Source of the DNA: Selaginella moellendorffii
Lineage: Eukaryota; Plantae; Lycopodiophyta
Length of the DNA: 64,000 nt
Assembly (NCBI RefSeq): GCF_000143415.4
Contig: NW_003314280.1
Coordinates: 1,364,894 to 1,428,893, forward strand
Direction: 5' to 3'
Position numbers and translations under genes: made by a program. The notes beneath the pieces are model-generated. The model did no database searches, was not told where the DNA came from, and saw only the letters and a list, made by a program, of their open reading frames with translations. This document shows, piece by piece, positions 7,820 through 40,384 of the stretch (position 1 is the stretch's first letter; each line of letters starts with the position of its first letter).

Positions 7820-8650
7820 AATACTGTAAGGAACCAACTCCTCGAGGTATTGTAGGTTGAAGGATCCCCAAAAGCACGACCAAAATGATAAAGAGTTTAT
7901 TGGATAAGACTAAGTCTGAGATTGAGTCCGAGATTGACTCTGAGATTGAGTTCGAGATTGAGTCCAAGATCGAGTGTGAGACCGATTCTGAGATCGAGTG
8001 TGAGATCGAATCTGAGACTGAGTTTGAGATCGAATCTGAGACTCCCTGAGGCCCAATCTCCAGTGGTGTTTCTAAACTGACTTGAGGTTGAGACTGGGCC
8101 TTAACGGCTTTGGGTGGGAGTGAACATGATGCTGGAGGGGCCACCCAAGGAAGTGCTCAAGAGCAACTCCCACTCCCGGAAGGGAAATCAACTACGATGC
8201 TTTTGACTCATGTGGAGTGGTGCCATACTTGAGTACCTTGCGGCTCATTGGTCCTCACCCTTCCTAGGGGCTTGGGCCTTCTCTTCGAGATAGAAGTGGG
8301 GGAGTAGGGGTACTTATACCAAATCATTAGGCTATAGTGTTTTCCCCTGATGTCCTGAAGCAAGTGTTGCATTCAAGGTTTAGGATTTAAAGGGTCCCAT
8401 AATTAAGTCTTATTGTACCAGGGATGTTAGGATTCTGGAAGCTTAGTGTGTTTGGTTACTTGTGCTTGCAGGGAGTGTAGCCGAACCTTAAATCTAGTCT
8501 AACTCAATGAGGGCGATTGAAAGAGAATTTGGGAATCTGTGGATGGATAGTTAACACTTTATTGCTTGTGCAGTGAGTTGCTGAAATCAATGAGGACTAA
8601 GTAGGAGTTGGTACAATAAGCAGGAACCTTGCCGAGGGAACTTAACTAAG

Positions 8651-9784
8651 TGTAAGGAACCAACTCACCGAGGTGTCGTAGGCTAAAGGAACCCCAAAAG
8701 CATGACCAAAATGACAAAGAGTTCATTGAATGGGACCAAGTCGAAGATCGAGTCCAAGACCGACTCTAGGACCGAGTTCGAGATAGAGTCCGGAATCGAG
8801 TCCGAGACCGACTCGGGGACCGAGTTCGAGTCCGAGTTTGAGACCGAGTTCGAGACGAAGTCCGAGATCTGAAATCGGGTCCGAGAGGTCGAGTCCGAGG
8901 TCGGGTCCGAGATCGGGTCCGAGATCGAGTCTGAGATCAAGTTCGAGACCGAATCCGAAGTCGGATCCGAAATCGGGTCCGAGATCGAGCCAGAGACTAA
9001 GTCCAAATACTAATACGGGTCAAGGGGTGAAAGCCCAAAGCGTGCGTCTCCCAGGGGGTTCCAAAAGTATAGTAGGGATAGTGAGGTCCAGGAACTAGTC
9101 TTGAAGGAACTCTCCAGTGGTGCTTCCAAACTGACTTGAGGTTGAGACTGGGGCCGAGGGGCCTTGGGTGGGAGTGAGCATGGGCTTGAGTGGTGCCGAA
9201 GGGGCCACCCAGGGAAGTGCTCAAGAGCAGCTCCCACTCCCGAAAGGGAAACTGACTGCGGTGCTCCCGACTCATGTGGAGTGGTGCCCCACTTGAGTAC
9301 CTTGTGGCTCATTGGTCCTCGCCCTTCCTAGGGGCTTGGGCCTTCCCTTTGGGATGGAAGTGGGGGGGGTAGAGGTACCCAGACCGGGCTGTTAGGCCAT
9401 GGTGTTTCGCCCCGACGTCCCGAAGCAAGTGCTGCACCCAAGACTTGGGATTTAGAGGGTCCCATGATCAAGTCTTGTGGTACCAAGGGGTGTTAGGAAT
9501 CTGGAGGCTTGGTGTGCTTGGCTGCTTGTGCCTGCGGGGAGTGTAGCCGAACCTTAAGTCCAGTCTAACCCGGGGAGGGGGATTGGGAGAGATTTGGGAA
9601 TCCGTAGATGGATGGCTAACACTCCGTTGCTCGTGCAGTGAGTAGCTGAGGCCAAGTAGGACCAAGTAGGAGCTGGTACCATAGGCGGAGACCTTGGCGA
9701 GGGAACTTAGCACAAGCCAAGGCAGAGTTGGTCGGATAGACGAGGTAAGTTGGCAAATTGGAAAGGAAAAATTTGTGGCTTACA
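8651..9784 (+). repeat. 5' LTR of the chromovirus, containing GAGTCC/GAGATC/GAGACC hexamer tandem arrays
   Basis: TGTAAG...CTTACA; near-identical to 34921-36094. Confidence 0.97.
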
Positions 9785-9787
9785 ATT

Positions 9788-10855: not shown

Positions 10856-11945
10856 TGTAGGCGACTAAATTTTCCATTCTACTTTAGTCACTTAACCACA
10901 CCTCCGACCACTTGGAGGAGTCTCATTCACAACCTCCATAAGTCCAATCCAGGACTTGGGACTTGCTAGCCCCGAGAATGGCATCCATGCCACTCAACAT
11001 TTGCACTTGGTCCAAGTGCTCCACGTGTCCGATCCCATGACCGACACTCAAAGGTACCACCAACATGCCAGCCCGTTACGCTAAGGCCATGCCCAATCAC
11101 CTTTGCCACACTGGTAGTCCATTACCACTTGCATCACAGTCTTGGCTCTCCAAGACTAGGCAAACCATCTGTGAGTGGTCATCTGAGATCCACTCCTTAG
11201 CACCCTTAGGATGCCCACCGACAAGGGGAATAGCCTTCCCCAATATCCCTTTGTCAGTCCCCACTAAGTCCCTTTCTGCCCCTGGCTGTGTTTGCCAACA
11301 CTGCCACTGGATCGAGACCCACAGGCCCGACCACTAAGTCCCATGGTCCTCTGGGACTTCCTCACCACATGACTGTGTCCTTGGTCACTACCCCAGAGGA
11401 CTGCTCCTCTTCCTTTCCACAGTCTGGGCCTTTGGGACAACATTTTGGAACACCGTGGCCTTACGCGAGCCACCTGGGTACTCTTCTCGCCTTCTGCCCT
11501 TAGGTGCTCTAGCCATGGGCTTAGAGCGAGGTTCCGTTGAGCCACGCCTGGTATCCAAGTAGGTAGTGCCACCCACACTTGGACTGGGAGCATCGGCCAG
11601 TCGATCTCCCGGGGGAACTAGAGCCGGCTCTTGAACACTTCACCAAGTTACCCCACTTGTCGGTCCGTGTTCACTCTAGTCTTGGACTTCCCAGTGGACA
11701 GCTCATCACCCAACACTGGGTCCGGCCTTCCTGGGCCAAACTGGCCTTTCCTGGCCAAACTAGCTCCACTACAGTCCTCCCCCTACTATACTTTTGGAGC
11801 TCACCAAACCCCCCAGGGTCTGGGAGACGAACGCTTTGGGCTTTCACCCTCTCAGACTCGAACTCAGACTCGGACTCGGACTCGGACTCGGACTTGGGCT
11901 CGGGCTCGGTCTCGGCCTCGGCCTCGGTCTCGTTCTCGGTCCCGA

Positions 11946-11983
<38 letters not shown>

Positions 11984-12458
11984 CCGGTCTCGGTCTCGAC
12001 TTCGGACTCCATCTCAGACTCCATCTCGGGTCCATCTCGGACTCCATCTCGAGTCCATCTCGGACTCCATTTCGGGTCCATCTCGAACTCCATCTCGGGT
12101 CCATCTCGGACTCCATTTCGGGTCCGTCTCGGGTCCACCTCGGACTCCATCTCGGACTCCATTTCGGGTCCATCTCGGGTCCATCTCGGACTCCATCTCG
12201 GGTCCATCTCGGGTCCATCTCGGACACTTCCACGTGTCCTGTGTTGGTCCTTTTTGGGTCCCTTTTTGGAGCCTCGCTTATTGCTCGCTTCATGCTTGTT
12301 CCTCGAGCACTTTGTTGGGAGTTCCACTCCCGCTCTTGACTTTTCAAGTCGGAGCTTTTGGTCCAAACGTGTTACGCTCGTTTGGGCTCTCGCTTTGGCC
12401 ACTACCACGTGGCGCCCTTCCAGCTCCACTTTGGGGCCTAGGGATTTTGTGTCTCACA
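10856..12458 (-). repeat. 3' LTR of the nested element
   Basis: Near-identical to 16577-18216; (TCTCGG)n, (ACTCGG)n and CCATCTCGG arrays. Confidence 0.95.
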
Positions 12459-16576: not shown

Positions 16577-18216
16577 TGTAGGCGACTAAATTTTCCATTC
16601 TACTTTAGTCACTTAACCACACCTCCGACCACTTGGAGGAGTCTCATTCACAACCTCCATAAGTCCAATCCAGGACTTGGGACTTGCTAGCCCCGAGAAT
16701 GGCATCCATGCCACTCAACATTTGCACTTGGTCCAAGTGCTCCACGTGTCCGATCCCATGACCGACACTCAAAGGTACCACCAACATGCCAGCCCGTTAC
16801 GCTAAGGCCATGCCCAATCACCTTTGCCACACTGGTAGTCCATTACCACTTGCATCACAGTCTTGGCTCTCCAAGACTAGGCAAACCATCTGTGAGTGGT
16901 CATCTGAGATCCACTCCTTAGCACCCTTAGGATGCCCACCGACAAGGGGAATAGCCTTCCCCAATATCCCTTTGTCAGTCCCCCACTAAGTCCCTTTCTG
17001 CCCCTGGCCGTGTTTGCCAACACTGCCACTGGATCGAGACCCACAGGCCCGACCACTAAGTCCCACGGTCCTCTGGGACTTCCTCACCACACGACTGTGT
17101 CCTTGGTCACTACCCCAGAGGACTGCTCCTCTTCCTTTCCACAGTCTGGGCCTTTGGGACAACATTTCGGAACACTGTGGCCTTACGCGAGCCACCTGGG
17201 TACTCTTCTCGCCTTCTGCCCTTAGGTGCTCTAGCCATGGGCTTAGAGCGAGGTTCCGTTGAGCCACGCCTGGTATCCAAGTAGGTAGTGCCACCCACAC
17301 TTGGATTGGGAGCATCGGCCAGTCGATCTCCCGGGGGAACTAGAGCCGGCTCTTGAACACTTCACCAAGCTACCCCACTTGTCGGTCCATGTTCACTCTA
17401 GTCTTGGACTTCCCAGTGGACAGCTCATCACCCAACACTGGGTCCGGCCTTCCTGGGCCAAACTGGCCTTTCCTAGCCAAACTGGCTCCACTACAGTCCT
17501 CCCCCTACTATACTTTTGGAGCTCACCAAACCCCCCAGGGTCTGGGAGACGAACGCTTTGGGCTTTCACCCTCTTAGACTTGAACTCGGACTCGGACTCA
17601 GACTCGGACTCGGACTCGGGCTCGGGCTCGGTCTCGGCCTCGGCCTCGGTCTCGTTCTCGGTCCCGATCTCGGTCTCGGTCTCGGTCTCGGTCTCAGTCT
17701 CGGTCCCGGTCTCAGTCTCGACTTCGGACTCCATCTCGGACTCCATCTCGGACTCCATCTCGGGTCCATCTCGGACTCCATCTCGGGTCCATCTCGGACT
17801 CCATTTCGGGTCCATCTCGGACTCCATCTCGGGTCCATCTCGGACTCCATCTCGGACTCCATTTCGGGTCCGTCTCGGGTCCACCTTGGACTCCATCTCG
17901 GACTCCATTTCGGGTCTATCTCGAGTCCATCTCGGACTCCACTTTGGACTCCAACTCGGGTCCATCTCGGGTCCATCTCGGACACTTCCACGTGTCCTGT
18001 GTTGGTCCTTTTTGGGTCCCTTTTTGGAGCCTCGCTTATTGCTCGCTTCATGCTTGTTCCTCGAGCAATTTGTTGGGAGTTCCACTCCCGCTCTTGACTT
18101 TTCAAGTCGGAGCTTTTGGTCCAAATGTGTTACGCTCGTTTGGGCTCTCGCTTCGGCCACTACCACGTGGCGCCCTTCCAGCTCCACTTTGGGGCCTAGG
18201 GATTTTGTGTCTCACA
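16577..18216 (-). repeat. 5' LTR of the nested element
   Basis: Adjacent to the PBS on the minus strand; near-identical to 10856-12458. Confidence 0.95.
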
Positions 18217-21071: not shown

Positions 21072-21117
21072 GTATGGGGTATTAAGTCAAGTTGTTGGCA
21101 CTAACACTTCTTGACAG
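21072..21117 (+). other. 46-nt spliceosomal-type intron in the integrase core
   Basis: GTATGG donor, CTAAC branch point, TTCTTGACAG acceptor; removal yields the canonical HPQTDGQTERVN. Confidence 0.9.
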
Positions 21118-21533: not shown

Positions 21534-22236
21534 GTAAAGATGCATATATTCTTGTAAAAAGCTCTATTTCGTTAAAGTGGGATTTATTCAGTAAAATGGG
21601 ACTAGGTACAAATTTTCAAGTATTTGAAAATGACGTGAAATTATATGTTTTTTGTCCAGGGGCTAGACATATCTGGGGCATGGTGACTAGCGCGGTGACT
21701 TTGTGTCTAGACTGAGTCCATCTGGTTGTATAATAAATCTCATTGTCAAGGTGAACAAGCCGAATCTGAAGCTAAAGAAGAGCGATGGCATGCGCGCACA
21801 CACTATTTGTTTGTTCATTGAGCGTGTGGTGAGCTTTCCAAGATGAACGTCATAGACATATAACTTAATGGTGAGAACATTTAGATATTATTCAATGTTA
21901 TCTTTTTCTAACGAATCTAATTGTGAAGGTGTAGCAAGAGGCATTGCTAGTCTGGAGAAGTCATTTAACTCATTTGACCCTTAGTGTATTTTCATGAAAC
22001 TAAATAACATTCATATTATTAAGGAATTTCTCTAGTACCTTTTTTTTACGACATAGAGGCTTGCATTTCTTTCAAAGGTGATTTAGTAAAAGGCCTGGGG
22101 GCACATGCCATTCTATTTCTCAGACCGGTATTAAGATATACTAGTGCAAAGGGCCACATGCCATCATGCCTCCTCTGATTCAGATTCGGATTGTTCACCT
22201 TGAAATAAAATACATTAGAAACTTAGTAAAGGAATA

Positions 22237-25200
22237 TTAATGAATCTCACCTTGAACCCGGGTTATGAATGCTCTTGCTGCATCTCTTGCATGGTTTGGC
22301 AAGGTGATGGTGGCACTCTGCTTCCGCATCCAACCATGCACAACATTATCCACCGATATGCTCATGCTGGGATCCCTTGGATTCAGCACCCATCTTTTTT
22401 CTAGGCAATCCTTCGTATATCCGGAACTTGGCTTGAACCACTCCACAGTTACATTGAAGGAGTTAGTTTCTGCGTCCTCCTCTGCATCAGTGATGCAGCG
22501 CCCCACCCATATCATTTGTTTTTTATTACTGGGTCTGACAAGCACGACCATTCCTTTGCAGACCTGTACTGGATTGAATGCTGAATCCGGCTTCTTGTTC
22601 CTCGGCCCACAATAGTGATCCTCAACATCGTTATCTGTCACTGCATTTCCAGAGGACATTGTTCCGCTACTATCTGGTGCTCTGGGTTCTGGCCAAAAGG
22701 ACTCTTCCAATTCTTCATATACAACCAGCCCATTTTGGATAGCAGATATAATCTTCTCCCAGTATTCGAGCAAAGGCTTGCACCTCTTAAAATAGGATTC
22801 TCCACCAAACACCAACCCCCTCTTCCAGAAGGCAATATGCTGTCTAATCCCGGCCACTATACTTTCCTGGTCTTTGAGTCCATCCGGGTGCATCGGCCGT
22901 GGGGAACCCTGAGGAATCATAGGTTCCCCAGTTATGGGATCTCTCTTGAAGAGTTCAATGCCATCCACTGGCAGCCACACTGTGTCCCATTCTCTCATCT
23001 TGTACCTCATCACTGGAGCACCGTCACGCATGCTGAAATGAAACTGAAGAGGCTTGGAGTGGCCAATCAGCGTTTCGGATCCGTCCCTGATGTAGCCTCT
23101 TACAAACCCCTTAAAGTCTGGAACCTCTGTCACAAGTGCAGCTTCAACAGTGCCTTTGATGCAATTTTGGAATTCATCGTAGAGTTGTGGGAGGGTGAGG
23201 ACATTGGATCGCCGGAGGGACTCTGCCAGGTGACTGAACATGGCATCGACGTCTTCATGAGTGTGCCCAACCATGAGAAAGCCAAGTGTAACCGTTTCAA
23301 ATATGCCTTTGGCAACAAGCATCGCCAAGTACGCGAAGACGTACATGTTTTTGTTCTCACTGCCAGCATTGTCTGTTTGGAGCAGAAGATGGGGTGGAAG
23401 GCCACATCGGCCGCAAGAACTTCCTTGAGATTCTGCTTCGTTTGGATGAGGCTGTGCATTCACCGGGCGACCAGCCTCGTCGGAATGGCATGAGGCCTCA
23501 CGTGATAACCCTACAATCTGACGGCCAACATATTCACTGGGATGGCATGGGGCCCCACGCGATACTGCAAGCCTTTGCTCCTCCTCCAGCTGAACCCTGT
23601 ATGGGGTTCGATCGACAAGGGCCTTATGCAAGGGTTGGCTGTTCAGCTCAGTCTGCGCACTTTGCAGAGACCTTAAGTGTTTTGCTAGGGACGCAATCAT
23701 CATGTTTGCACCCCCGCCACCCCATAGAGGTACAAAGAAGTTCCCATAGTTCTGGGCACCATGCCCATGAGCGATTATGCCAAACAGAGACACAGGCAGC
23801 TGCATGGATGAAGAGATTGCCTTGGGGGCAGGATTGAGTCGAGGTAAGCACGTCTTTTTCTGGTCCATTTTGTCGTGGATGATGCAGAGGTAAGAGTCAG
23901 GTCTCTCCATGGAGAGAATCCTGTTATGATAATATGCAGTCCTGCAGCTTCTCTGCTCGATGTTGTGGTCGAGCCGCCTTCTAACTAACGTCTCTCGCTC
24001 TTGAGCGCTGCAAGAATTCTTCGACAAAGCCATTTTGATAGCAGTGCACTCGTCACACTTTGAAAAGCTGGAGTACTTTCCTATACTCACATCCCTGAAC
24101 CTGTTGCTCCACAATCTACTAAATCTAGATTGGCTCAGCTTCCTGTAGCCATTACTCTGGAGTTCCCGATTCACATCTTCCAATATGGCCCCCTTGGTAT
24201 ACATGGAAGGGAGAACTCGTTGGGTGTCTCGTGTTCCATCTTCCAAGAGGCGGGTTTTATGTGGTTGCTGCTCGCTACATGTCTCGACAAACCTCTTGAA
24301 GATTGCCTCTCCATATACAACATGACCCCTGGTTTTGTGCGTACCGTCGTTCCCATGGACTGCTTGTTGAACCCTTTGTTCCTCGAACTCAGTTTTGATT
24401 CTGTAGAATGTGCTTCGAGGGACTCCATAAATAATTCTCCATGCCTTCATGCAGACCAAACCCCTCTGGAAGACCATGCCCCCCACCTGATGTTCTGAAG
24501 CATCAACAGATGACCGTAATGCCTCATACACAAAATTGCGAGCTGCCTTCCAGGACAATGTCTTGTATCTTGCTCTCTCCTCTTCAATAGCATCCCAATC
24601 AGCATGTTGACAGCACCTCCTTTTGCAACAAGCAACTGTCGAGACCATTCGAACCTCCATCGCCATTTTCTGCCTTTTCGGTTCGTTGCTCAGATCCCTT
24701 TGGCTGCGCTGTAGGAAGGTGTACTTTCTTTTCCCATGAAGAGATGTTCTGTCATCAGTTGTAGTGGTGTTTGATTGTGAATCCTTCACATTCTCAAACA
24801 CTAAATGCCTCAATTTCCACCGCACAATGCTTCCAATAGTCAGACTGTTTTCTTCTGTGTCAACAACCTCTAAAATCGCAACTCCAATATCATCCCAGCC
24901 CAATTCTTGATTAGCAACCGCATCTCTTGGATCGACAACTGTGGCTAAGCCCTTAGCTACCACCTCCCCCTCGGGGTTGTTTAGAAACACCTTTGCCTGA
25001 ATCCATGTAGCACGGTTCTTAAGATCCACGGAGGGAACATGTGTCGCATTTGCGCTGTCCCCAACATCTGCTTTCTTCTGCAGATTTTTCAAGGCAACAA
25101 CAACATTTACCCCGACGACCATCTCTCCTCGGTCAATAGCGACCACATTCCCATCGAAGACAGTCTCTACTGATACAGCAGCATTGCCTTCCCCAAGCCT

Positions 25201-25305
25201 TTGACAGTGTATAACAAAGTTCCGATCCATAGACACAAGGGTCCCTTTTGCAACTCTCTTCCCACCATTCAAAATGTAAACCTTTTCCCCAACCCTGAAG
25301 GCCAT
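22237..25305 (-). CDS. Sola1-like (DUF7869-type) DDD transposase, 1022 aa, uninterrupted
   Basis: Motifs HDKMDQKK, LLLQTDNAGSENKN and FLMVGHTHEDVDAMFS; Cys clusters CCKRRC, VCMKAW and SKCDEC; lies inside TIRs with a 4-bp TSD. Superfamily assignment is from recalled motifs. Confidence 0.8.
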   Translation of the reverse strand: MAFRVGEKVYILNGGKRVAKGTLVSMDRNFVIHCQRLGEGNAAVSVETVFDGNVVAIDRGEMVVGVNVVVALKNLQKKADVGDSANATHVPSVDLKNRATWIQAKVFLNNPEGEVVAKGLATVVDPRDAVANQELGWDDIGVAILEVVDTEENSLTIGSIVRWKLRHLVFENVKDSQSNTTTTDDRTSLHGKRKYTFLQRSQRDLSNEPKRQKMAMEVRMVSTVACCKRRCCQHADWDAIEEERARYKTLSWKAARNFVYEALRSSVDASEHQVGGMVFQRGLVCMKAWRIIYGVPRSTFYRIKTEFEEQRVQQAVHGNDGTHKTRGHVVYGEAIFKRFVETCSEQQPHKTRLLEDGTRDTQRVLPSMYTKGAILEDVNRELQSNGYRKLSQSRFSRLWSNRFRDVSIGKYSSFSKCDECTAIKMALSKNSCSAQERETLVRRRLDHNIEQRSCRTAYYHNRILSMERPDSYLCIIHDKMDQKKTCLPRLNPAPKAISSSMQLPVSLFGIIAHGHGAQNYGNFFVPLWGGGGANMMIASLAKHLRSLQSAQTELNSQPLHKALVDRTPYRVQLEEEQRLAVSRGAPCHPSEYVGRQIVGLSREASCHSDEAGRPVNAQPHPNEAESQGSSCGRCGLPPHLLLQTDNAGSENKNMYVFAYLAMLVAKGIFETVTLGFLMVGHTHEDVDAMFSHLAESLRRSNVLTLPQLYDEFQNCIKGTVEAALVTEVPDFKGFVRGYIRDGSETLIGHSKPLQFHFSMRDGAPVMRYKMREWDTVWLPVDGIELFKRDPITGEPMIPQGSPRPMHPDGLKDQESIVAGIRQHIAFWKRGLVFGGESYFKRCKPLLEYWEKIISAIQNGLVVYEELEESFWPEPRAPDSSGTMSSGNAVTDNDVEDHYCGPRNKKPDSAFNPVQVCKGMVVLVRPSNKKQMIWVGRCITDAEEDAETNSFNVTVEWFKPSSGYTKDCLEKRWVLNPRDPSMSISVDNVVHGWMRKQSATITLPNHARDAARAFITRVQGEIH

Positions 25306-25484
25306 TCTGAAAGTGCAGAAAAGAAGTTAAGACCATACAAAAAATGATTGGAGAATGGCCTAAATCATAACATACCAAATAACATGAGGCCACATGCCAT
25401 TATTCAAACATGCTATTGACACCCACGTGAAATTTCGCATTCACAAAATTGGCATGAGCCCTCATGCCATTAGTGGTACCACTA

Positions 25485-25676
25485 ATGGCATGAGGCCTCA
25501 CGCTATCTTTGGCCCCTGCTAGCCTGTTGCTATATTCCTTTTGCCTTGTTGCAACTGTATATATTTTTGTGTGCGTGACTAGTCACCCATACAAAAATAT
25601 ATACAGCTGCAGCAAGGCAAAACGAATATGGCAATAGGCTAGTAGGGGCCAAAGATAGCATGAGGCCTCATGCCAT
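25485..25676. repeat. ~190-bp fold-back inverted repeat
   Basis: Arms pair around the centre GTGACTAGTCAC (25576-25587) with few mismatches. Confidence 0.9.
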
Positions 25677-26809
25677 CTTGATATACACACAGCTGCAGGC
25701 AAGTAAAAACATACATGACAATACGCTAGCCATGAAATTGCAAGGGCCCAAGATGGCATGTGGCCTCATGCCATTTCTAAATGTGGTCCTAAACCATTCC
25801 ATGGTGAACATACCAGGAAGCATAAGTGCCGAATATCAAGAGGAAGCGGTAGCCACACCAAAGACAGTGCCGCTCGCAACACCGCAACTACTCGTAGCAC
25901 CGCTCGCAACACCGCAACTGCTCGTAGCGCCGCTCGCACAAACTGCCACTCGCATAAACTGCCGCTCGCAATGGCGCTCGCAATGGCACTCGCAATGCCG
26001 CAACCGCTTGTAGACGCATAAACCACAGCTCACAACGCCGCTTACACAAGCATCGCTCACTGCGCTCAGCGGAACCAAGAACACGGCGCACAAAAATGAT
26101 AGACCTAGGAATGAGTTCGAGAATTCAAAAATAACACACGCTTGAACGTCACATCAAATCCTCTGACAAACCAGATCTTATGATTCCTCTGACAAATTTC
26201 AAACTGAGTAGCTTCTAGACTTTGCTGTCGGAGGTTGAACTTTGTCACATCATGTCCTTGCCTCGATCCAACTGTGCCATGTCAGTGATTCGAACTTTGC
26301 CATGCCATGTCAGCGATCCGCGCCAAGATTATTCGCCGTGTAAAGGAATAATTATGCTGTGTGTGTACGTCCATTTATGGCAATATAAGGCCACATGCCA
26401 TTCAAAGAATAATGCTAGTCGAGCATTTTTTGGTGCATTTTTGGGTTCAAAATTGCATGAGCCCACACGCTATAAAGTTTACCTGTACCAAAAATAGAAA
26501 CAGCTTTATTTACTTGGGAATTTAAGTGATTGAGGCATTTTTAAACTTACAAACAAATGCCCTACTTACATTCCTTTGGTTGCTTAAAATTCAAAAATAT
26601 TATAAACCTTTCTTTTTGCATTTTCAATGTTTTCAATTATGGTTTTTGATTTTCGCAGGACTAGCCTAGTAATCTATTTGCATCCCGTCATGTTTATAGC
26701 TAGCTTTCGTTTGTCCCCTTCGCTAGCCTGAGATACATCTGCTCGGCATCTGCCTCTTACAGCATTTGCCCAGAAAGGGCATCTTTCTTCACGCAGCATT
26801 TGCCACATG

Positions 26810-26841
26810 TTTAGGGTTAGGGTTTAGGGTTTAGGGTTTAG
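26810..26841 (+). repeat. Interstitial plant telomere repeat
   Basis: TTTAGGG TTAGGG TTTAGGG TTTAGGG TTTAG. Confidence 0.9.
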
Positions 26842-28054
26842 CAATTCAGTAGCTTGATAAACATGCAAATACAGAACTTGATGCAAAATCCTTTGATATG
26901 TCACAATGCCCCTAGGACCATAAACACATTTTAATAGAGAGGGTCCTTTCATTTCATAACTCCTTACGTAGATCTTGGTGAAACCAGAGTTAGTGAAGTT
27001 GGTTTCTTGTGATCCCGCATCTGATTGTGATGTCCCTTTCCAGTGTCGATGGAAAGGTCAATGCACACCAAACTGTAGAATCTTGGAGCAAAATAACGGT
27101 CGGATCTATGGCAAATGCCCCTGAAACATTGTAAGGCTCGTGTGGTCTCATGTGGTGTCCGATCGAGATGCTTCTTTGCAGGGTCATCAACAAGGACATT
27201 GTATACCATTCTGTAAAATCTGGTTGCGATCTAACGGTTGGATCTCCAGGAAACTCAAAACAATCTCGCGCGTGTCAGAATATTCTAGGAATATACTCCT
27301 ATGTGCTCCTGAAAATGGCATGCGGCCCCACGCCATTCAAGAGATAACGCCAGATGACGCCGAGCATTTTTTGGTGCATTTTTTGGGATCAAAATTGCAT
27401 GAGCCCACATGCTTGAACGTCACATCAAATCCTCTGACAATTTATTTAGCTGAACATCTGGCATTTTTGGAAATACAAGATGCTTTGGAATATCCAATCA
27501 TGCATGGTATAAATATAGCGAGGGTATTAAATGATATCCCAATCATGATCTTTCTTTTGGATTTCGCGTGCATGCAGTCAGAGGAATGATGACGTTGCGG
27601 ATTTCTTTTGGATTTCACGCATGCGCGCGCCGATCCAGAAATTAATGGTGGCGCCCAAGTCCGAGAAATGATGACGTGGCGGGATTACCAACCGTCGTGA
27701 CATTTCGCGCGTGTGAGGTTAGGTTTTGCATTTTGCTTCGTACTCGCGCTCGCACACTCGCGCTCGCATCGCGCTCCCACTTCTCTACAGGTTTCTCGTG
27801 TGCATCGGCGTCCACTCGCGCTTGCATCGCGCTCGTGTGCATCGGCGTCCACTTCAAGACACACCCAGTTTGTAACTTCGCCGCCAACTCCGCCGCCCAC
27901 TTCGCCACCCATACGCAGCCCACTTGGCGTCCCGGGAGATTTCAGCGCCACTCTCCAACTGTAAGTGGCAGAGTAGCCTTGCTGCTACGATCCGCTGCAC
28001 ACACAGTGCACATTCGCCAGCGAGTCCGGTTGTCACGCCTCCATTCGGCTTCAA

Positions 28055-31000
28055 ATGGTAAGTCTTTTAGGCCAAGTAGAAAATGGCATGAGGCCACATG
28101 CCATTCAGTAGCAACATTGGCATGCACCGATTAGGCTCTCGAGTGCAGTCCGGTTACAGATGGCGTGTAGCCTCACGCCATCTTAGGATGCAGCCTCAAG
28201 ACATCTGATGCAGTGGTGAATGGCGTGTGGCCTCACGTTATTTCCAGCTACTAGTTTTTCATCTGTCAGCTCTAATTGTTGTGCATTTCTGAACAGGCGA
28301 GGAATTGCGTTCTTCTTCCAGCCACTGTCAATGTGGATGCAGAGAAGGGGGAGGAGCTCACCAGTTGGACTTTTGGGATGGAAGGCGAGGATCTGAGGCT
28401 GTACAACACAGATGGTGGGAGAAAAGAATGCATGGGGATCCTCATCCAAGTGACAGACACTCCATGCAGTTCCATGCAAGAATATGGACTGGCACTTGTG
28501 GTAGAGACAGCGTCTGCCTTCAAGATCCACCTTGCACATCCTAGCGGCTTCCCGGAGGGGGGCAGCGGCTATGAGGAATTCCTAGAGGGAGCTAGGGAGA
28601 GGTTGTCCAGGAGGCCCACAATTTCAAAGATGCTGCGGGTCTATGAAGATCACATGGAATCTACGGACCTCACCTACGGCGATGTTCAAAAACTATATTC
28701 CAACATTGAGCCGTTGAGAGTGACTCCAGTTCGCGAAGCAAAGGGGAAGGGGGTCGATCTGGAAACTACCTCGAAGCAGAAAAGGGTGGTCAAGCTCAAG
28801 CCGACGTTCGACTCTCCTGCTCCAAAAAAGAAGCTACTCAGTGATGCCATTGCCTCGGGTTCGAACACTACACCCACCAAAAAGAAGAGCCGCAAAGAGC
28901 AGAAAGAGCAAGAAGAGGCAGCAAAAATCGTCGCAGATAATAGTACTTGTTACTATTCCAACAAAGTATATACAATCGACGTGAGCCGTATCGACATCCA
29001 AAGCAAATACAACCACAGGCTAGTATCTGATGAGTGGGTGGAGAAACTGAAGCAGAAGATGCTGGCAAGTCCAGTAACACCCGACATCGCAGACGTGATC
29101 CCCTACTACCGAACAATGAAGGGCGAGACGAGGTTTCCAGACTTGATCAATAGGAAGGTGTTGGACGATCAGAACATCCGGTTCTATGCCGTCTCCGGGC
29201 AGCATTCTAGCTTGGCGATGCAAGAGATAGTTGTGGATATTATGGTGGGCGAGGAGGTGAAGAAAGTCTTCAAGACAAGAGTTGTCCGCCTGATAAAAGG
29301 CAACTCGCCCCTCCGATCTATCATATACATCTCCCATGCGCAGAATGTCAAGCAAGAAACGTGCTACAAATCGGGTCTGCACGAGACATTGGCACGAACA
29401 CGGAAGCTCTGGGTTCAACTGAAGAAGCCACAAAAACCAGGACAAGGACGTGCACTAGCAACTAGCGCCTAGCAGGTAAGCCTCGTTGCATGTGGCATAG
29501 CATGTGGCCTCACGCCATTTCCATTGCAGGAATTCTCGAGTCTTCTCTCGAAAACACTGGGGGTCAATGACACACTCAGCATCCATAACATTCTACTCGC
29601 GACAAAAGTTGTTTTTGACAAATGGGTAGATGTGCTGAGGAGGTACCATGACGGGGAGTTGCCAAACTCAATGGGTGTGGAGGACGGTCGGAAGCCCAAT
29701 GATTTGAAGCTCAACGCCTTGCGTTTCTCGCGGTCTCTAGACGACGACGACCTTCTGACAGTGGCTAATGCTCTTCTACGTGGTGAGGTAGTCTTCAACA
29801 AGACCAAAATGACTCCCGGCCATATTGTGACATACGAGGACTTGTGCATGACTCTGAGAGCTCGTGCGCTATTGAAGGATTGGATCTTCGAGCAAGTGGC
29901 CGTGGAGAGGGTGAGCATCGACACCACGCAAGAGATGATGGAAGCGCTGGAGTTGTCAAATGAAGACATCGACGAGTACGTGAAGGGGGCCCCCAAGTTC
30001 ATCGATCTGCTGCGGGATGCCACGAAAAGTAAAGCTGAGAAGTTGGATCAGTATCCAAATTTCATTAAGATTGATGTCGACCGTCGGCTTCAGAAACAGC
30101 TCGACCCCGCAGCAGAGGCCTATCGAGAACCTTACCGGGTATACTTGAATTCGGATGAGGATCAAAGGTGGAGGAGCATCGTTTCCCACGGAGATGAGCA
30201 GGTCAAGAACATCTTTTGTGTGATGGACTTCACAAACGAGGAGATCACTCATGCAGACGAAGTCAGCTCCATCATTGACTTGATGGTGGGACTTGCAGAG
30301 GTGGAATCTTCAGTCCACTATATGATCTACGACTCCGAATCCTATCACAAGTTCTGAAAGGCCTTGAACGAGGTGAAGGCTCGGTTGAAAGGCAAGGAGA
30401 TGCGGGAGATCCATGGGATAATGGCTAAGAAGAAGATACCGACGAATGTCCACATCTTCACACTCGCCCTTGTTATTGGTCCTGCAACAGAGTGGGACTG
30501 GAGTGACTTCCCAGCTTCGTTCGACAAGGCCAATCGAATTGATCTGAGGGAGGTCAATTTACCCGTGCCTGAGGAACTGAAGACGGCTATGGAGCTTTCC
30601 AATCCAAAGAAAGCTCCAGGTACAGCATGGGAAATGCTCAGCTGGGTCTTCAACGCAATAGCGGGTGGGTCACCTGCTTCCGACTCCAAGGGCAAATGCG
30701 TTGTCGAGTACAACTGCGGCGGACTATTCTTTCGAGCCGCACTACTCAAGGGTGTCCCGTGTGTTGCTGTGACAAACTCCATTGAAGAGGTGACTTCAAT
30801 GGAGCATATAATTACAGTTGCCAAAGAAAAACAGTATCTTCTCTGCGAACCTGGTGAGTACACACTTTAAGTTTAAATGTTATCTCACAAGCTCTGTATG
30901 CAGGAGCGTGGCCACCCCCAGATGCTGAAACGGCGTTAACAGCTAATGTTGAAGATACCCATGTTGGGCCGAGCTCACAACCTGCACAAGGTAAGGTCAC

Positions 31001-32750
31001 GTGAGGCCTCACGCCATTTTGATTATAGATCGTTGTGAATATTCAGACACGAGGACTGAAAAGCGCACTGGTGGCGCATCGAAGAAGGACAAACAGACAA
31101 GCAATAGGAAAAAAGGAGGTACAAATTATATTTGCAATGGCGTGTGGTCTCATGCCATTCCTTGCAGGAGAAACTTCTTCAAAGGCAAAACAAGCAAGCA
31201 CCAGCCAAGCTCAAACTGACAATGGTCATAAAAAGCGAAAGCACGTTGGACAGTCGTCGAGATCAGAGGCGTTTGATTCGAAAAGGAAGAAGGGCAACGA
31301 AAAGATGATAGGTAATGCCTCGCGGTTATGGCGTGTGTGCTCATGCCATTCATTGCAGATCAAGGGCTGAGTGAAAGCAGGCAGTCACCACCTCATGACT
31401 CAGATTCCTATGGCGGACTCCCCTTCCCCAATCTCAATGGAGAGGTACAATGGATGAGGGATGCTTTTCAAGTCAGGGCCACGTTTTTCTCATCTTGTCG
31501 TCTTCGAAGGGTGCAAGAACGTGCAGAAACCATGTTAAGACAGTCGGGTGAGGATACGGTCCTAGGTCACGCACTAAAACAGGCTATGGATGTCTTGTAT
31601 TTTGAGATGGAGACTCGGCCAGATGATTTTCCCAAGATGGTCCTGGAAGAACAAGCCATCCAGCCTGAGCAGCCTATGGAAGAAATGCAGGAGGGGGATG
31701 AGGAGCCAGAGAAAGATAATGAGCAGGAAGAGCAGAAGGACGAAGAGGAGGACAAAGAAGAGGAGGACGAAGAGGACTTGAATGGTCCTCACAATGGTGA
31801 CGATCACAATAACGACGACGACGATGATGACGACGATGGCCAGCCTGAGGTGGCCAAAGAGCAGCGGAGGAAGGTCATACAAGACAAACCATCAGGTAAA
31901 TAATAGTACATCCATTCCTAACCTTTTACCATTTCTAACATTGTCCATGTAGGTCGCAGAGCAAATGGTAAGTAGAGATTATTCAGTTGAATTTACAAAC
32001 TCTAGCCTTTAGTGTCGAGGAAGGATAGTGCCAAGCAAGGGTCGAAACGTATGTCCAATCCTTCAGAATCAGCAGTGCGCCCAAGTGATATCGGTCCTAG
32101 TTCCTCAATAGCAGTTGATGGTAAATACAGTATAGTCTATTCAATGTGCTAATGAGTTTGTTTTTAGTAGCACGGGAGGATACCATCTCAATCGAAGGGA
32201 GATATTTGGACATGCATATGGATCCGCCAGTGGACTCTACTTGGCTGCAAGAGTCATCAGAGCTGGTGGAGGCTACTATCCATATCAACGCCAAGCAAGC
32301 TGACCACGCTCCACTTGATGCTGCCCATACCACTGAGTCAATCTTGTCCACGTATCCAACTGACGGTGACCAGGCGCCATTGGACCCACATGAGGCCGCC
32401 CCAGCCGCCGAGCCGGTCGTATCCTCATTTCCAACGGACTCAACGTGTGCCCAATCGTCTGACTACGCGCCGTTGGAACCTCCCTACACCGCCCCTGCTG
32501 CCTGTTCGGTCATGTCCACTTTGCCAACGGAGGCACCAGCTGAAATGGCGTGTGATCACACGCCATCGGAACCACCCCATGCCACTGTTGAGCCAGTTGT
32601 ACCAGAGTCTACAGCTGAAATGGCATGTGCCCACACGCCATCGGATGCGATTGACCCCACATTGCAGAGGAGAGTATTTCCGCCCTTCACGTTTCCTCGA
32701 CCAAAACCTTCTCAACGACCATCGGGAGCAACATTCGCTAATATTGTAGA
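28055..32750 (+). pseudogene. Multi-exon transposon cargo gene (ParB/Srx-like, methyltransferase-like, acidic and Pro-rich regions); two in-frame stops in this copy
   Basis: ORFs 28276, 29524, 30364, 31328 and 32146 join via GT-AG introns (e.g. 29476-29529, 30854-30903, 30991-31028), mostly phase 1; stops at 29470-29472 and 30355-30357. The start codon is inferred. Confidence 0.7.
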
Positions 32751-32777
32751 TGCTAAAATTGACTTGTACCATTTTTT

Positions 32778-33662
32778 ATGCTGACGCATTTCATTTCAGA
32801 GTCACGGCGAAGGTACTGTATCGTTTTTGATCTGAACGGTGTCCTTTTCTCCCATGAGCGTGGCTCATCCTCGAATGTCATTGCACCCTCCAAAGCCTGC
32901 GGTCGCAAGTTGGTCAAAAGAGACAGATTCACATTAATCACACGGGAGAAACTGTGGGATCTAATAATGACCATGCGACACTTAAAACAGAGGGCCGGGT
33001 TCAATTTGCAATTGGGAGTTTGGACATCCATGATGCGCCACAATGCATTAACGTTGCTACAGATGATGCACGATCAGACGCGAGTAATATTACCATTTGA
33101 CTTTCTCCTAACGCAGGAGGATTGCTTGACTATGGTCCATGTGAGGGGTAGCAAGCCCATCTTCGTCAAGCCAGAGGCTGTAGTGATGAACCGGACTGCT
33201 AGCTCAAGTGAAATCCTCATCATCGATGACTCGCCTATTAAAACTGCAGCGAACACGCACACATATGCAGTGCACCCCATCTCTTGCAATATGGAAACTA
33301 GGGAGAAGAAACCGTATGTTCTGGGGGACCTTGCAAAACGGCTTGGAGCGATGGTGATAGAGAACCGGCCAGTCCAGGAGGTGGCTGCAGAAATCAACCA
33401 AATGGCAGATGGAACGGTATATCAGAAGCCATTTGATCGGACAGACACCAGTCATCATTTATGGCATGTATATTGTCTAGCCAAGCACTATCCGCATCTC
33501 CATAATCTGCTCAACCGGATGGGTTCTTCGACCACTGAACATGAGCGTGGACGTATTAGAGAAGAGATGGCATTACTATTGGGTTTAAATCCTGATAGTG
33601 TGGAGAGTGATGAAATTCCAAGATTATTGTATAGGCGTTGGAGGCAAAAAATAACAGTCTGA
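32778..33662 (+). CDS. NIF/FCP1-like HAD phosphatase domain (possibly the last exon of the cargo gene)
   Basis: IVFDLNGVL, LGVWTSMMRHN, LLTQEDC, KPIFVK and ILIIDDSPIKTAAN motifs. Confidence 0.8.
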   Translation: MLTHFISESRRRYCIVFDLNGVLFSHERGSSSNVIAPSKACGRKLVKRDRFTLITREKLWDLIMTMRHLKQRAGFNLQLGVWTSMMRHNALTLLQMMHDQTRVILPFDFLLTQEDCLTMVHVRGSKPIFVKPEAVVMNRTASSSEILIIDDSPIKTAANTHTYAVHPISCNMETREKKPYVLGDLAKRLGAMVIENRPVQEVAAEINQMADGTVYQKPFDRTDTSHHLWHVYCLAKHYPHLHNLLNRMGSSTTEHERGRIREEMALLLGLNPDSVESDEIPRLLYRRWRQKITV

Positions 33663-34135
33663 GATGGCATGTATTTATTTAAAAATGTAACTTATTATGG
33701 CATGGGGTTCCATGCCATTGTATTAATATTAAAAGACAATTCTTTGAGAGGATTTGCATTATACTAGAAGTGTTACAGTATGTTATTGGAAGTCTACGAA
33801 GTTGTTTTATTAATAAGGGGAAAGTAAAGATTGAATGGGGACTTGGGCTCCACCTAGACCCGGAGCAACTGAGCCAATATTAAAAGGATGGAAAGAAATT
33901 GGACGACGATGACAAGGAGAAGAGAGAGGTGAAGCAGTGGCAGGGGGAGGAGAAGTGATTGAGTAGACATTTCCTTGTTTAAAATAAAATGGCATGTGCC
34001 TCAATGCAATTGAATTTTGTTATATTTATATACTATATAAAGGTTTGGAAACCTTATTTTACAAGTGGGATAATGACAATTCCCACTTTAACGAAATAGA
34101 GCTTTAAATGAATTGATCTTGAGTTCCTTAAGCAG

Positions 34136-34920: not shown

Positions 34921-36094
34921 TGTAAAGAACCAACTCGCCGAGGTGTCGTAGACTAAAGGAACCCCAAAAGCATGACCAAAATGACAAAGAGTTCATCGGA
35001 TGGGACCAAGTCGAAGATCGAGTCCAAGACCGACTCTAGGACCGAGTTTGAGATAGAGTCCGAAATCGAGTCCAAGACCGACTTGGGGACCGAGTTCGAG
35101 TCCGAGTTCAAGACCGAGTTCGAGACGAAGTCCGAGATCCGAAATCGGGTCCGAGACCGAGTCCGAGGTCGAGTCCGAGGTTGGGTCCGAGATCGGGTCC
35201 GAGATCGAGTCCGAGATCGAGTCCGAGACCGAATCCGAAGTTGGATCCGAAATCGGGTCCGAGATCGAGCCAGAGACTAAGTCCAAATACTAATACGGGT
35301 CAAGGGGTGAAAGCCCAAAGCGTGCGTCTCTCCGAGGGGGGGGGGGGGGGGGGGCTGCAGGGGGTTCCAAAAGTATAGTAGGGATAGTGAGGTCTAGGAT
35401 AGGAACCAGTCTTGAAGGAACTCTCCAGTGGTGCTTCCAAACTGACTTGAGGTTGAGACTGGGGTCGAGGGGCCTTGAGTGGGAGTGAGCATGGGCTTGA
35501 GTGGTGCCGGAGGGGCCACCCAGGGAAGTGCTCAAGAGCAGCTCCCACTCCCGAAAGGGAAACCGACTGCGGTGCTCCCGGCTCATGTGGAGTGGTGCCC
35601 CACTTGAGTACCTTGTGGCTCATTGGTCCTCGCCCTTCCTAGGGGCTTGGGCCTTCCCTTCGGGATGGAAGTGGGGGGGTAGAGGTACCCAGACCGGGCC
35701 GTTAGGTCACGGTGTTTTGCCCCGACGTCCCGAAGCAAGTGCTGCACCCAAGACTTGGGATTTAGAGGGTCCCATGATCAAGCCTTGTGGTACCAAGGGG
35801 TGTTAGGAATCTGGAGGCTTGGTGTGCTTGGCTGCTTGTGCCTACGGGGAGTGTAGCTGAACCTTAAGTCCAGTCTAACCCGGGGAGGGGGATTGGGAGA
35901 GATTTGGGAATCCATAGATGGATGGCTAACACTCCGTTACTTGTGCAGTGAGTAGCTGAGGCCAAGTAGGACCAAGTAGGAGCTGGTACCATAGGTGGAG
36001 ACCTTGGCGAGGGAACTTAGCACAAGCCAAGGCAGAGTTGGTCGGATAGACGAGGTAAATTGGCAAATTGGAAAGGAAAAATTTGTGGCTTACA
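34921..36094 (+). repeat. 3' LTR of the chromovirus
   Basis: Matches the 5' LTR; carries an extra poly-G run near 35335-35354. Confidence 0.97.
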
Positions 36095-37689
36095 CTAAGG
36101 CCAAAGTTGTGGTGGTCGGATATACGAGGTAAACTAATAAATTGGAAAGGAAAAATTTATGGCTTACAAATGCGAGGATTGATAGCAAGAGTAAAAGGAG
36201 TTATACCACGTGTTATAAATGCTACCATGAACTGAGTTTGATTGTTCAATTGCAATTACATGGCATAGAACAACTTCATCAACTGTTGCTCTAGAGTCAA
36301 AAGAGGAAGTTATTACTCTGCTATGAAAATAAATGAAAAGGAAAAAGAAAAAGAAAAGAAATTGTGAGAGGCAATTTTGATTATCCTTAGTGGAGATGAA
36401 AGGTAGTTTTAATTATCTTTAAAGAGTGTTTGGATTTAGGATTTTGGTTTAAATTTAGCTTTTGCATACTCTAGATCTCACTTTCATTATAACTTTTTTC
36501 TTCACCAATTTGAGTGTATGGAATATTAAAATGGAATAAAGAAATATGCATATCCAAAAATTTTAGTTATATATAGAAGTGAGTGGTCTAGATTGAAACC
36601 AATCTGACGGCTACTAAAATCCCATTATGCTAATATTAGTATATAGCATTGTAACACACCTCACACTTATAAATTATAATATTATTAAAATAATTTAATT
36701 TTTTAATATAATAATAAGTCTATATAGTTTTATATTTATTAATTATTCTTTTTTAATTTTTAGTCAATTAGATAAGTTTTTTTAAAATTTGATAGTTTAC
36801 ACTATTTTTTAACCATTGTAACAGACTTTCACCCCAGGCAACTATATAATTTATAATTCTCATTTTTAGGATAAATATCACAATTTAACAAGTTTAAAAA
36901 TTAACTAGAATAACTATGGTTTGCACTAGTGTTGTGAGTGAAGTATCTTCAAGAAGAATATGTTAGATACTCAAATCTTTTAGATTTAATGGTTATTATT
37001 TTTAGTATATCTTTAGTATATTCTGAATTTCGTATAAATATCTCAAATTGTTTAACAATTAACGATTGGAAAAAAAATGCATTCTTATTTATAAACATTT
37101 TCCCTTTATATTTGAATTTTTATTTTTAAGAGTACTAACTTACCAATAGAAACACAATTTAGTGTTATCTCGAAAAGTTGTGTATACATAATAGTAATGG
37201 ATAAAAGCTTTTGGATGGTCACCCGTGCTTTTTCCAGGCCACTCATCCCATGGCCATAAAGTGATTTAGTTGTGAAGAGTGAAATATTTCTCTTATAGAA
37301 AAAATTGCTTGCATTGTCATTCTTTCCTTTGTGGCAGAAGAGTTGCCAGTGATAATTGGGGACTACCTAGGTTTTTTCTTGTCAAAGAATCACACCCTCA
37401 AGTGCAGCAAAATATTCCGGGGCATGGGTGCTCTTCTGCCGGTACGCTCTTCGCAAAGGATTAGGGTTTACATTAGCTTCGTTTTCTCTAAGCAAAGTTT
37501 GGTAGCTGAGCTGAGCGGTATCATTGCAGGCTACATGTGCCAATTGCATATCCCGGCTGGCCGTTGTCGATAGTGACGCCCTGGTAAGGATAAGTTGGTT
37601 TTCGATCGATTTCATCACAGTTGAGCAACGTTAAGTGGCCAGGTAGCTCCAGCAGCTGGATCGTCCTCGTCGACATTTAAGCCTTCCGA

Positions 37690-38645: not shown

Positions 38646-40384
<1,739 letters not shown>

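Follow-up and report, generated by a model that had tools for sequence, protein, structure and literature searches.

The present work analyses a window of 64,000 nucleotides from the lycophyte Selaginella moellendorffii (contig NW_003314280.1, positions 1,364,894 to 1,428,893), in which a cut-and-paste DNA transposon of 12.5 kb occupies positions 21559-34104. The element encodes a transposase and, in the opposite direction, an accessory or cargo protein, and it bears about 22 copies of a palindrome, ATGGCRTG-N6-CAYGCCAT, distributed along its body. Scanning of the whole window yielded nine exact matches to this motif and 21 at up to two mismatches, all of them within 21785-34010, against a shuffle expectation of 0.00-0.06, and none at the same tolerance in the 51.5 kb outside the element. 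An earlier note on this DNA had described a recurring motif with no full copy elsewhere in the window, carried by an element bounded by terminal inverted repeats (TIRs) and a target-site duplication (TSD), and both descriptions are borne out. Judged from sequence, the palindromes fit a private code of protein and site that is kept by selection throughout the element.

The boundaries of the element are as follows.

21555-21558, no strand: TSD TAAA, left copy, read from the sequence
21559-21585, + strand: left TIR, from inverted-repeat pairing
21587-21601, + strand: sub-terminal motif TTCAGTAAAATGGGA, also present in copy L001 and at both ends of the related element L089
34078-34104, - strand: right TIR, from inverted-repeat pairing
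34105-34108, no strand: TSD TAAA, right copy, read from the sequence

The TIR pair measures 28 nt (21558-21585 and 34078-34105) and is 96% complementary. The left end is confirmed by L001, an independent deletion-derivative copy from a public run (97% identical), whose match stops exactly at 21559. The 4-bp TSD and the TIRs of a Sola1 transposon are thus both found, and the empty site could be reconstructed by joining the flanks; the Sola1 label may be applied to the element by virtue of the architecture that it has in common with Sola1-1_Ec32 of Ectocarpus. The insertion lies in the integrase gene of a chromovirus-type long terminal repeat (LTR) retrotransposon, inside a short GT..AG intron, such that joining 21534-21558 to 34109-34135 restores the intron between KLTQ.. 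and ..FAGPYEIE. The integrase gene contains short GT..AG introns, one at 21072-21117 and a second, into which the DNA transposon has inserted.

The palindromes and where they lie

In addition to the 21 matches, a degenerate copy is found at 30997-31018, in intron C of the accessory gene. Of the half-site ATGGCRTG, the element holds 35 occurrences and the rest of the window four, a 36-fold difference in density within the window. When spacers of 0-14 bp were permitted in the search, 6 bp alone was recovered. The constant spacer length claimed beforehand therefore stands, but the spacer sequence is not freely variable: it has the consensus WGGCCW, which makes the whole site a near-perfect palindrome of 22-24 bp.

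At the R/Y position of the half-site, CpG alternates with TpG/CpA. The same mixed forms recur in L001, which retains four palindrome copies at positions identical to those of the window, so this variation is a trait of the family and not the decay of the window copy; pure CpG decay was rejected as its origin on the same ground. The element is depleted in CpG (observed/expected 0.70), and 13 of the 27 listed transitions that distinguish the window copy from other copies fall at CpG.

Copies outside the introns are listed here; being palindromic, they are given without strand.

21785-21806: copy with two mismatches, left sub-terminal region (scan at up to two mismatches)
22090-22111: copy with two mismatches, 3' of the transposase gene (scan at up to two mismatches)
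23485-23506 and 23542-23563: two copies, in-frame in the hypervariable transposase linker; the same two are present in L001
25379-25774: cluster of five copies (25379, 25449, 25485, 25655, 25753), ahead of the transposase ATG by 74-470 bp
26452-26473: copy with two mismatches, intergenic (scan at up to two mismatches)
27315-27336: exact copy, intergenic (exact scan)
28083-28241: three copies (28083, 28160, 28220) in the leader directly upstream of the ParB-like exon
32545-32641: two exact copies (32545, 32620), in-frame in a low-complexity open reading frame (ORF) rich in Pro/Ala/Thr
33697-33718: exact copy, 35 bp past the NIF-like ORF (exact scan)
33989-34010: copy with two mismatches, right sub-terminal region (scan at up to two mismatches)

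By location, two copies lie in each sub-terminal region, two in the transposase linker, five in the 470 bp that precede the transposase ATG, two between the genes, three in the cargo leader, four in cargo introns and two in the Pro/Ala/Thr-rich stretch. Few unconstrained stretches are left empty: copies are found at the element ends, in the promoter, in four of the five introns and in disordered coding linkers, at a body-wide spacing of roughly 550 bp. The largest gaps between sites, of 1.1-1.8 kb, coincide with conserved coding blocks, and each unconstrained segment between these blocks has at least one site, from which it follows that a site is present in nearly every stretch of the element that tolerates one. 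The divergent promoter region also contains a near-perfect palindrome of 192 bp (25485-25676), formed by two gapless 96-nt arms that are 91% complementary, the tips of which are the 22-bp copies 25485 and 25655.

The intronic copies lie 9-11 nt before the 3' AG, where they overlap the zone in which the branch point is expected, and each of the three leader copies precedes a 3' splice-site-like YAG. Introns A, D and E have in common an end composed of the palindrome plus the 3' splice site. The folding energy of intact copies is -5 to -9 kcal/mol, with z about -3, but the copy in intron A retains the half-site sequence and has lost hairpin pairing. Unmatched R/Y sites on the sense strand comprise five G-U and three A-C pairs, with no preference in pairing. 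These last two properties favour recognition of the duplex sequence over that of a single-stranded structure.

Coding capacity of the element

The coding features of the element and the introns of the accessory gene are given below, with the palindrome of each intron where there is one.

22237-25305, - strand: transposase ORF of 1022 amino acids (aa), intact, DDE type, DUF7869 (PF25273) by Pfam
28276-31903, + strand: accessory gene of six exons (28276-29475, 29530-30853, 30904-30990, 31029-31118, 31168-31311, 31359-31903), its frame open through five introns apart from two stops
28846-29469, + strand: ParB/Srx-fold domain with the motif SGQHS, by AlphaFold2 (AF2) and Foldseek
29470-29472, + strand: in-frame TAG, private to the window copy; other copies (runs X1, X3 and X19) have G at 29471 and a sense codon
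29476-29529, + strand: intron A, 54 nt, with palindrome 29497-29518
30355-30357, + strand: in-frame TGA, read from the spliced frame
30358-30849, + strand: methyltransferase (MTase)-like part, with VVEYNCGG..AALLKG resembling motif I by eye
30854-30903, + strand: intron B, 50 nt, the sole intron lacking a palindrome
30991-31028, + strand: intron C, 38 nt, with the degenerate palindrome
31119-31167, + strand: intron D, 49 nt, with palindrome 31137-31158
31312-31358, + strand: intron E, 47 nt, with palindrome 31328-31349
32778-33662, + strand: FCP1/NIF-like phosphatase-like ORF of the haloacid dehalogenase (HAD) type, PF03031, E = 1.9e-5, past the Pfam cut-off

The transposase motifs HDKMDQ, QxDN (here QTDN) and GHTHEDxD (here GHTHEDVD) are invariant in six homologues, and the DDE triad of Sola1 is thus present. 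DUF7869, which is not mentioned in the literature searched, is the only Pfam match of this protein, which is 33-37% identical to proteins of roughly 1000 aa from metagenomes and one NCBI assembly. Conservation is uneven: the N-terminal 215 aa are 28% conserved, compared to 55-60% in the core, and could for this reason carry lineage-specific recognition, and the linker that bears the palindromes is hypervariable (22% identity). The earlier description of an intact transposase beside a divergent cargo gene holds for the transposase and for the orientation of the cargo, but the accessory gene is broken in the window copy by the TAG and the TGA, and this copy is partly decayed.

The spliced frame of the accessory gene comprises 1129 codons from a putative start site, with five predicted GT..AG introns of 38-54 nt; two possible RNA runs gave unspliced contigs and no spliced ones. 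Its ParB-like domain (residues about 200-392) has 13 weak remote homologues, found by exhaustive search, whereas a word-indexed homology search with the same piece came back blank. The AF2 model built from the alignment of these homologues reaches a predicted local distance difference test score (pLDDT) of 78.8, and its best Foldseek matches are Noc, ParB, sulfiredoxin, KorB and PadC. The assignment to ParB is made at the level of the fold only, as the domain has no sequence-level match in Pfam (E up to 10), in phmmer and hmmsearch comparisons with Protein Data Bank (PDB) sequences or in NCBIfam. The motif SGQHS, invariant in the 13 homologues, takes the place of the cytidine triphosphate (CTP)-binding GxxR (GxxRxxA) of canonical ParB CTPase clamps. 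The parallel with bacterial ParB/parS drawn in the earlier note thus survives as a fold but loses the CTP-binding motif.

The remainder of the accessory protein is less easily read. The model of the 275 aa encoded by 29530-30354, which follow the ParB-like domain, is unusable (pLDDT 39), and neither a helix-turn-helix (HTH) nor an MTase core is visible in so poor a model. The MTase-like part resembles PF01555 N6_N4_Mtase clusters by protein-language-model (protein-atlas) features alone; it has no Pfam match, and catalytic motifs of the DPPY and FxGxG types are not recognisable in it by eye. Catalysis by the NIF-like ORF is doubtful because its motif I reads DLNGV where the HAD motif is DxDx(T/V); NIF is nevertheless the sole Pfam match of all cargo pieces at E up to 10. 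A VANC domain, the other parallel offered in the earlier note, was sought by Pfam in every ORF of the element and gave no match, which leaves the analogy unsupported at the protein level.

In the DNA run X1, more than 25,000 short contig pieces cover 28000-33700, so the family is highly repeated in the organism of that run. One variant copy in X1 has telomere-like GGTTTAGGGTTTAGGG in place of 86 bp at 28430-28517, some copies lack 59-63 bp at 31320-31384, including the palindrome of intron E and its 3' splice site, and a fold-back joint occurs at palindrome 32545. One run contains TTTAGGG repeats, which, like the short introns, agree with the spikemoss Selaginella as the source.

Related lineages and other repeats

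A metagenome scan provided 80 loci that encode related transposases. Five further transposase lineages each bear a palindrome of their own, restricted to that lineage and found mostly in the 1.5 kb that precede the transposase ORF.

L005: CCTATGGCC-N4-GGCCATAGG, 12 copies
L006: TTGGCCATATGGCCAA, six copies
L003 and L004: GTTATCGTCG-N3-CGACGATAAC, 15 and seven copies
L018, L022 and L027: GAAATCTAGCA-NN-TGCTAGATTTC, four to five copies
L029: CCACGGGTG-NN-CACCCGTGG, 10 copies

The transposases of the palindrome-bearing lineages are only 24-36% identical, and the persistence of the trait across such distances, with complete turnover of its sequence, argues for selection on it. Different palindromes in related lineages are also what a cognate pair of protein and site predicts.

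Among the loci reached through the ParB-like homologues, two are of chromosome scale, L089 and L091, and in both the gene is again paired divergently with a transposase of the DUF7869 type; the contigs of three other homologues are too short to reveal their context. L089 is a TIR-bounded element of 16.8 kb that bears ATSGGGACGCGTCCCSAT 27 times, where 0.02 occurrences are expected. Four of its palindromes lie in the homologous transposase linker and three in an annotated intron that matches intron A of the window, and a NIF-bearing gene follows the ParB-like gene, as a NIF-like ORF does in the window, so that the whole design is repeated. In L091 a third palindrome occurs seven times. The short contigs L086 and L088 carry private palindromes in the intron directly after the ParB exon; the position of intron A is conserved in L086, L087, L089 and apparently L088, and L086, L088 and L089 have their own palindrome there. 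Tandem palindrome units of 28 bp in L089 (7072-7518, 9751-9824, 11725-11798) and of 57 bp in L003 (8211-9098) suggest that the arrays grow by local duplication.

The ends follow another course. The 15-nt sub-terminal motif TTCAGTAAAATRGGA is common to the left end of the window element, to L001 and to both ends of L089, where about 0.004 exact matches are expected in the 1.1 Mb searched. Since it is common to lineages with wholly different palindromes, end recognition looks conserved while the palindromes turn over. A TIR search in the AT-rich L027 returned noise only.

The earlier note had asked whether related families carry different motifs, and the five lineages, L089 and L091 do so. Among 85 transposase loci, which comprise L003, L004 and L027 with flanks of 8-10 kb, a search with a profile of the domain detected no ParB-like ORF, and tblastn of the cargo pieces against 85 transposase loci gave no match. 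Palindrome arrays with no detectable ParB-like gene beside them occur in two lineages with such flanks, which shows that the palindrome trait can exist in the absence of the cargo; the transposase of L003 looks intact.

Several repeats of the window lie outside the element. Another palindrome, GAATGGCATCCATGCCACTC, lies in the duplicated segment of the retrotransposon, at 10976 and again at about 16697 in the 5.7-kb duplicate; it contains an ATGGCAT core as in the half-site, with a 2-bp spacer, and the resemblance is probably due to chance. Tandem 11/12-bp (23-bp) repeats like TCCATCTCGGAC are found at 11997-12275 and 17708-18033, in two segments of roughly 1.6 kb that are duplicated 5.7 kb apart and 97-98% identical. 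Direct repeats at 7825-9785 and 34921-36169, 26.3 kb apart and 92-97% identical, bracket the host retrotransposon and may be its LTRs; the left one has an internal duplication about 1.06 kb apart. A further pair of direct repeats (1338-1966 and 38775-39485) is 90-93% identical, with its members 37.4 kb apart.

Candidate readers and known systems

The palindromes are read here as duplex-DNA docking sites for a dimeric protein encoded by the lineage that carries them, most likely the transposase, and hence as a private recognition code; the analysts' probability for this reading is about 0.45. The element's own protein would find the element through its private palindromes on double-stranded DNA. 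The transposase would be the most likely reader, being the sole protein common to all palindrome-bearing lineages and having a cluster of sites directly upstream of its ORF in every lineage. Sites at that position could serve the assembly of the transposition complex, the autoregulation of the divergent promoter or both, and the body-wide copies would add avidity across the 12.5-kb element.

Several points weigh against this assignment. Cut-and-paste elements do not usually have 20 or more internal sites for their transposase, and the conservation of TTCAGTAAAATRGGA amid differing palindromes makes end recognition by the transposase look conserved, so that the palindromes may be read by a different protein that evolves faster. 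Multi-copy palindromes are classically the targets of ParB-family proteins, and the cargo is modelled with their fold. Most of the relatives known by their transposase only are short contigs that end inside the palindrome array, where the divergent cargo gene would come next, and in L004 and L027, both of them decayed, that gene could have been lost. The transposase is accordingly placed only slightly ahead of the ParB-like protein among the candidate readers that the element encodes. The ParB-fold accessory protein as reader is a tentative alternative, in which it would load at the private palindromes along the body, in the manner of plasmid KorB at its OB operators or of Noc/ParB at NBS/parS. 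Its MTase-like and FCP1-like parts would then have a local effect, by modification of chromatin or DNA or by engagement of RNA polymerase II, the outcome being self-marking, transcription control or anti-silencing, in line with the earlier note. The ParB/Srx fold, the MTase-like features and the NIF-like ORF of the window element speak for it, as do the divergent pairing of cargo and transposase, which the window has in common with L089 and L091, and the palindromes that flank the ParB exon, with a lineage-private palindrome in the next intron in the window, L086, L088 and L089. The spacing of roughly 550 bp suits a protein that loads and spreads better than it suits end recognition, and the separate fates of the conserved TIR motif TTCAGTAAAATRGGA and the diverging palindromes point the same way. 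Comparable proposals have been published for Ectocarpus Sola1 (PMC12477816) and for PAG3 of Bostrychia Plavaka (bioRxiv 10.1101/2025.02.11.637652). Yet arrays stand beside transposase genes that have no detectable ParB-like ORF within 8-10 kb, SGQHS replaces the CTP-binding GxxR of clamp-forming ParB, no HTH is visible in the part modelled at pLDDT 39, Pfam returns neither a ParB nor an MTase match, and the catalytic motifs of both the MTase and the phosphatase look degenerate (DFTN, DLNGV). A more elaborate form of the same idea, and an unlikely one, would turn this degeneracy to account: the accessory protein would be a three-part pseudo-enzyme (a ParB fold lacking the CTP motif, an MTase-like part lacking catalytic motifs and an FCP1-like part with DxN), the eukaryotic counterpart of plasmid KorB/OB, loaded at the private palindromes of introns and linkers as an element-wide regulator addressed by sequence, which would hold RNA polymerase II or block silencing on its own transposon only, with site and reader co-evolving so fast that families are insulated from one another.

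The other explanations dispense with a protein of the element. It is improbable that the palindromes act as single-strand hairpins, whether through the geometry of branch point and 3' splice site in mini-introns, by feeding small RNAs or as DNA cruciforms in replication or repair. The copies 9-11 nt upstream of the 3' AG in four of five cargo introns, the folding energies of intact copies and the three copies in the homologous L089 intron would suit such a role, but many copies lie at the element ends or between genes, some are translated in-frame, the intron-A copy keeps its half-sites without pairing, G-U is not preferred over A-C, the 8-bp stem is too short for Dicer, and the two possible RNA runs hold no spliced contig. 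Very improbable is a selfish or neutral by-product with no function for the element, such as a mobile palindromic unit (similar to repetitive extragenic palindromic, REP, sequences or to introners) or a product of tandem duplication or gene conversion. Point mutation alone could not have produced 22 copies of a motif of 16-22 bases, so that a copying process of some kind is required, and the tandem units of the relatives and the common ends of introns A, D and E agree with one. Against a mere by-product stand the absence of copies from the 51.5 kb outside the element, the lack of flanking duplications at the palindromes, the identical positions in L001 and the persistence of the trait, with its sequences fully replaced, across lineages whose transposases are so divergent; an origin of the palindromes as miniature inverted-repeat transposable elements (mini-MITEs) or introners was rejected in the window for the first two of these reasons. 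The least probable explanation is that the sites are bound by a host factor, for instance a transcription factor acting as a dimer or a protein sensitive to methyl-CpG, and that the element has accumulated them for its divergent promoter or for the escape from or attraction of chromatin marks. The intergenic promoter region harbours five copies, a CpG/CATG position is part of the half-sites, and the element has the CpG depletion and CpG transitions described above, but a site of the host should also turn up in the rest of the window and be common to the families of one genome, whereas the palindrome differs with each lineage and its half-site is 36-fold enriched in the element.

The transposase-centred code and its ParB-based alternative both have precedents. 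The Ectocarpus element Sola1-1_Ec32 carries, on the strand opposite to its transposase, an accessory gene of 1104 aa with ParB-like and DNA-methyltransferase domains, for which its authors suggest binding and modification of the transposon itself (Genome Biol 2025, PMC12477816); the word "palindrom" has no occurrence in that paper, and palindromes are not mentioned there. Compared by description, not by sequence, the two are alike as giant Sola1-type elements with an accessory gene of about 1100 aa (1104 versus 1129 codons here) opposite the transposase, and they differ in that the MTase part of the window element is weakly recognisable, an FCP1/NIF-like ORF follows it and the host is a land plant. 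In Bostrychia, Plavaka elements of the CACTA type have the ParB-like PAG3 beside inverted-repeat arrays that differ by family, and binding and modification of the own element is again proposed (bioRxiv 10.1101/2025.02.11.637652). Plavaka belongs to another transposase superfamily, the ParB-like domain of PAG3 is fused to a 2-oxoglutarate (2OG) oxygenase and not to MTase-like or phosphatase-like parts, and its arrays are tandem and beside the gene, whereas the copies described here extend across introns, linkers and both ends. Fusions of ParB and MTase were noted earlier in chlorophytes (PMC4738411). The gene pairing and the idea of self-binding were thus already published in 2025 for brown and red algae, and the window case is not a new system.

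More distant systems illustrate each half of the proposal. Bacterial ParB/parS, Noc/NBS and KorB/OB of RK2 combine a ParB-fold protein, among the best structural matches of the cargo, with many palindromes of 13-16 bp dispersed over one replicon; the window element differs in its SGQHS for GxxR, in its eukaryotic host and in having sites in introns and coding linkers. In Arabidopsis, VANDAL21 of the Mutator superfamily has a family-specific short motif in its non-coding DNA, about 9 bp long and non-palindromic, which is read by the element protein VANC21, and anti-silencing has been demonstrated; by Pfam, VANC21 has no sequence relation to any ORF of the window element. En/Spm (with TnpA), Ac and piggyBac possess family-specific transposase-binding repeats, often inverted dimers, in sub-terminal positions near the ends or promoter and within a few hundred bp of the ends, whereas the sites of the window element span its full 12.5 kb. 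If a transposon protein does read a private, body-wide palindrome, this would be a simple and testable example of a eukaryotic mobile element that tells self from non-self. A site that is wholly replaced between lineages while its positions (promoter, homologous intron and homologous linker) are constant offers a natural series for the co-evolution of a DNA code and its reader, and mini-introns that are half palindrome bear on the way in which binding sites are accommodated inside genes. What is added to the known systems is a land-plant case, the body-wide and intronic placement of the sites, the comparison across lineages and the conserved TIR motif.

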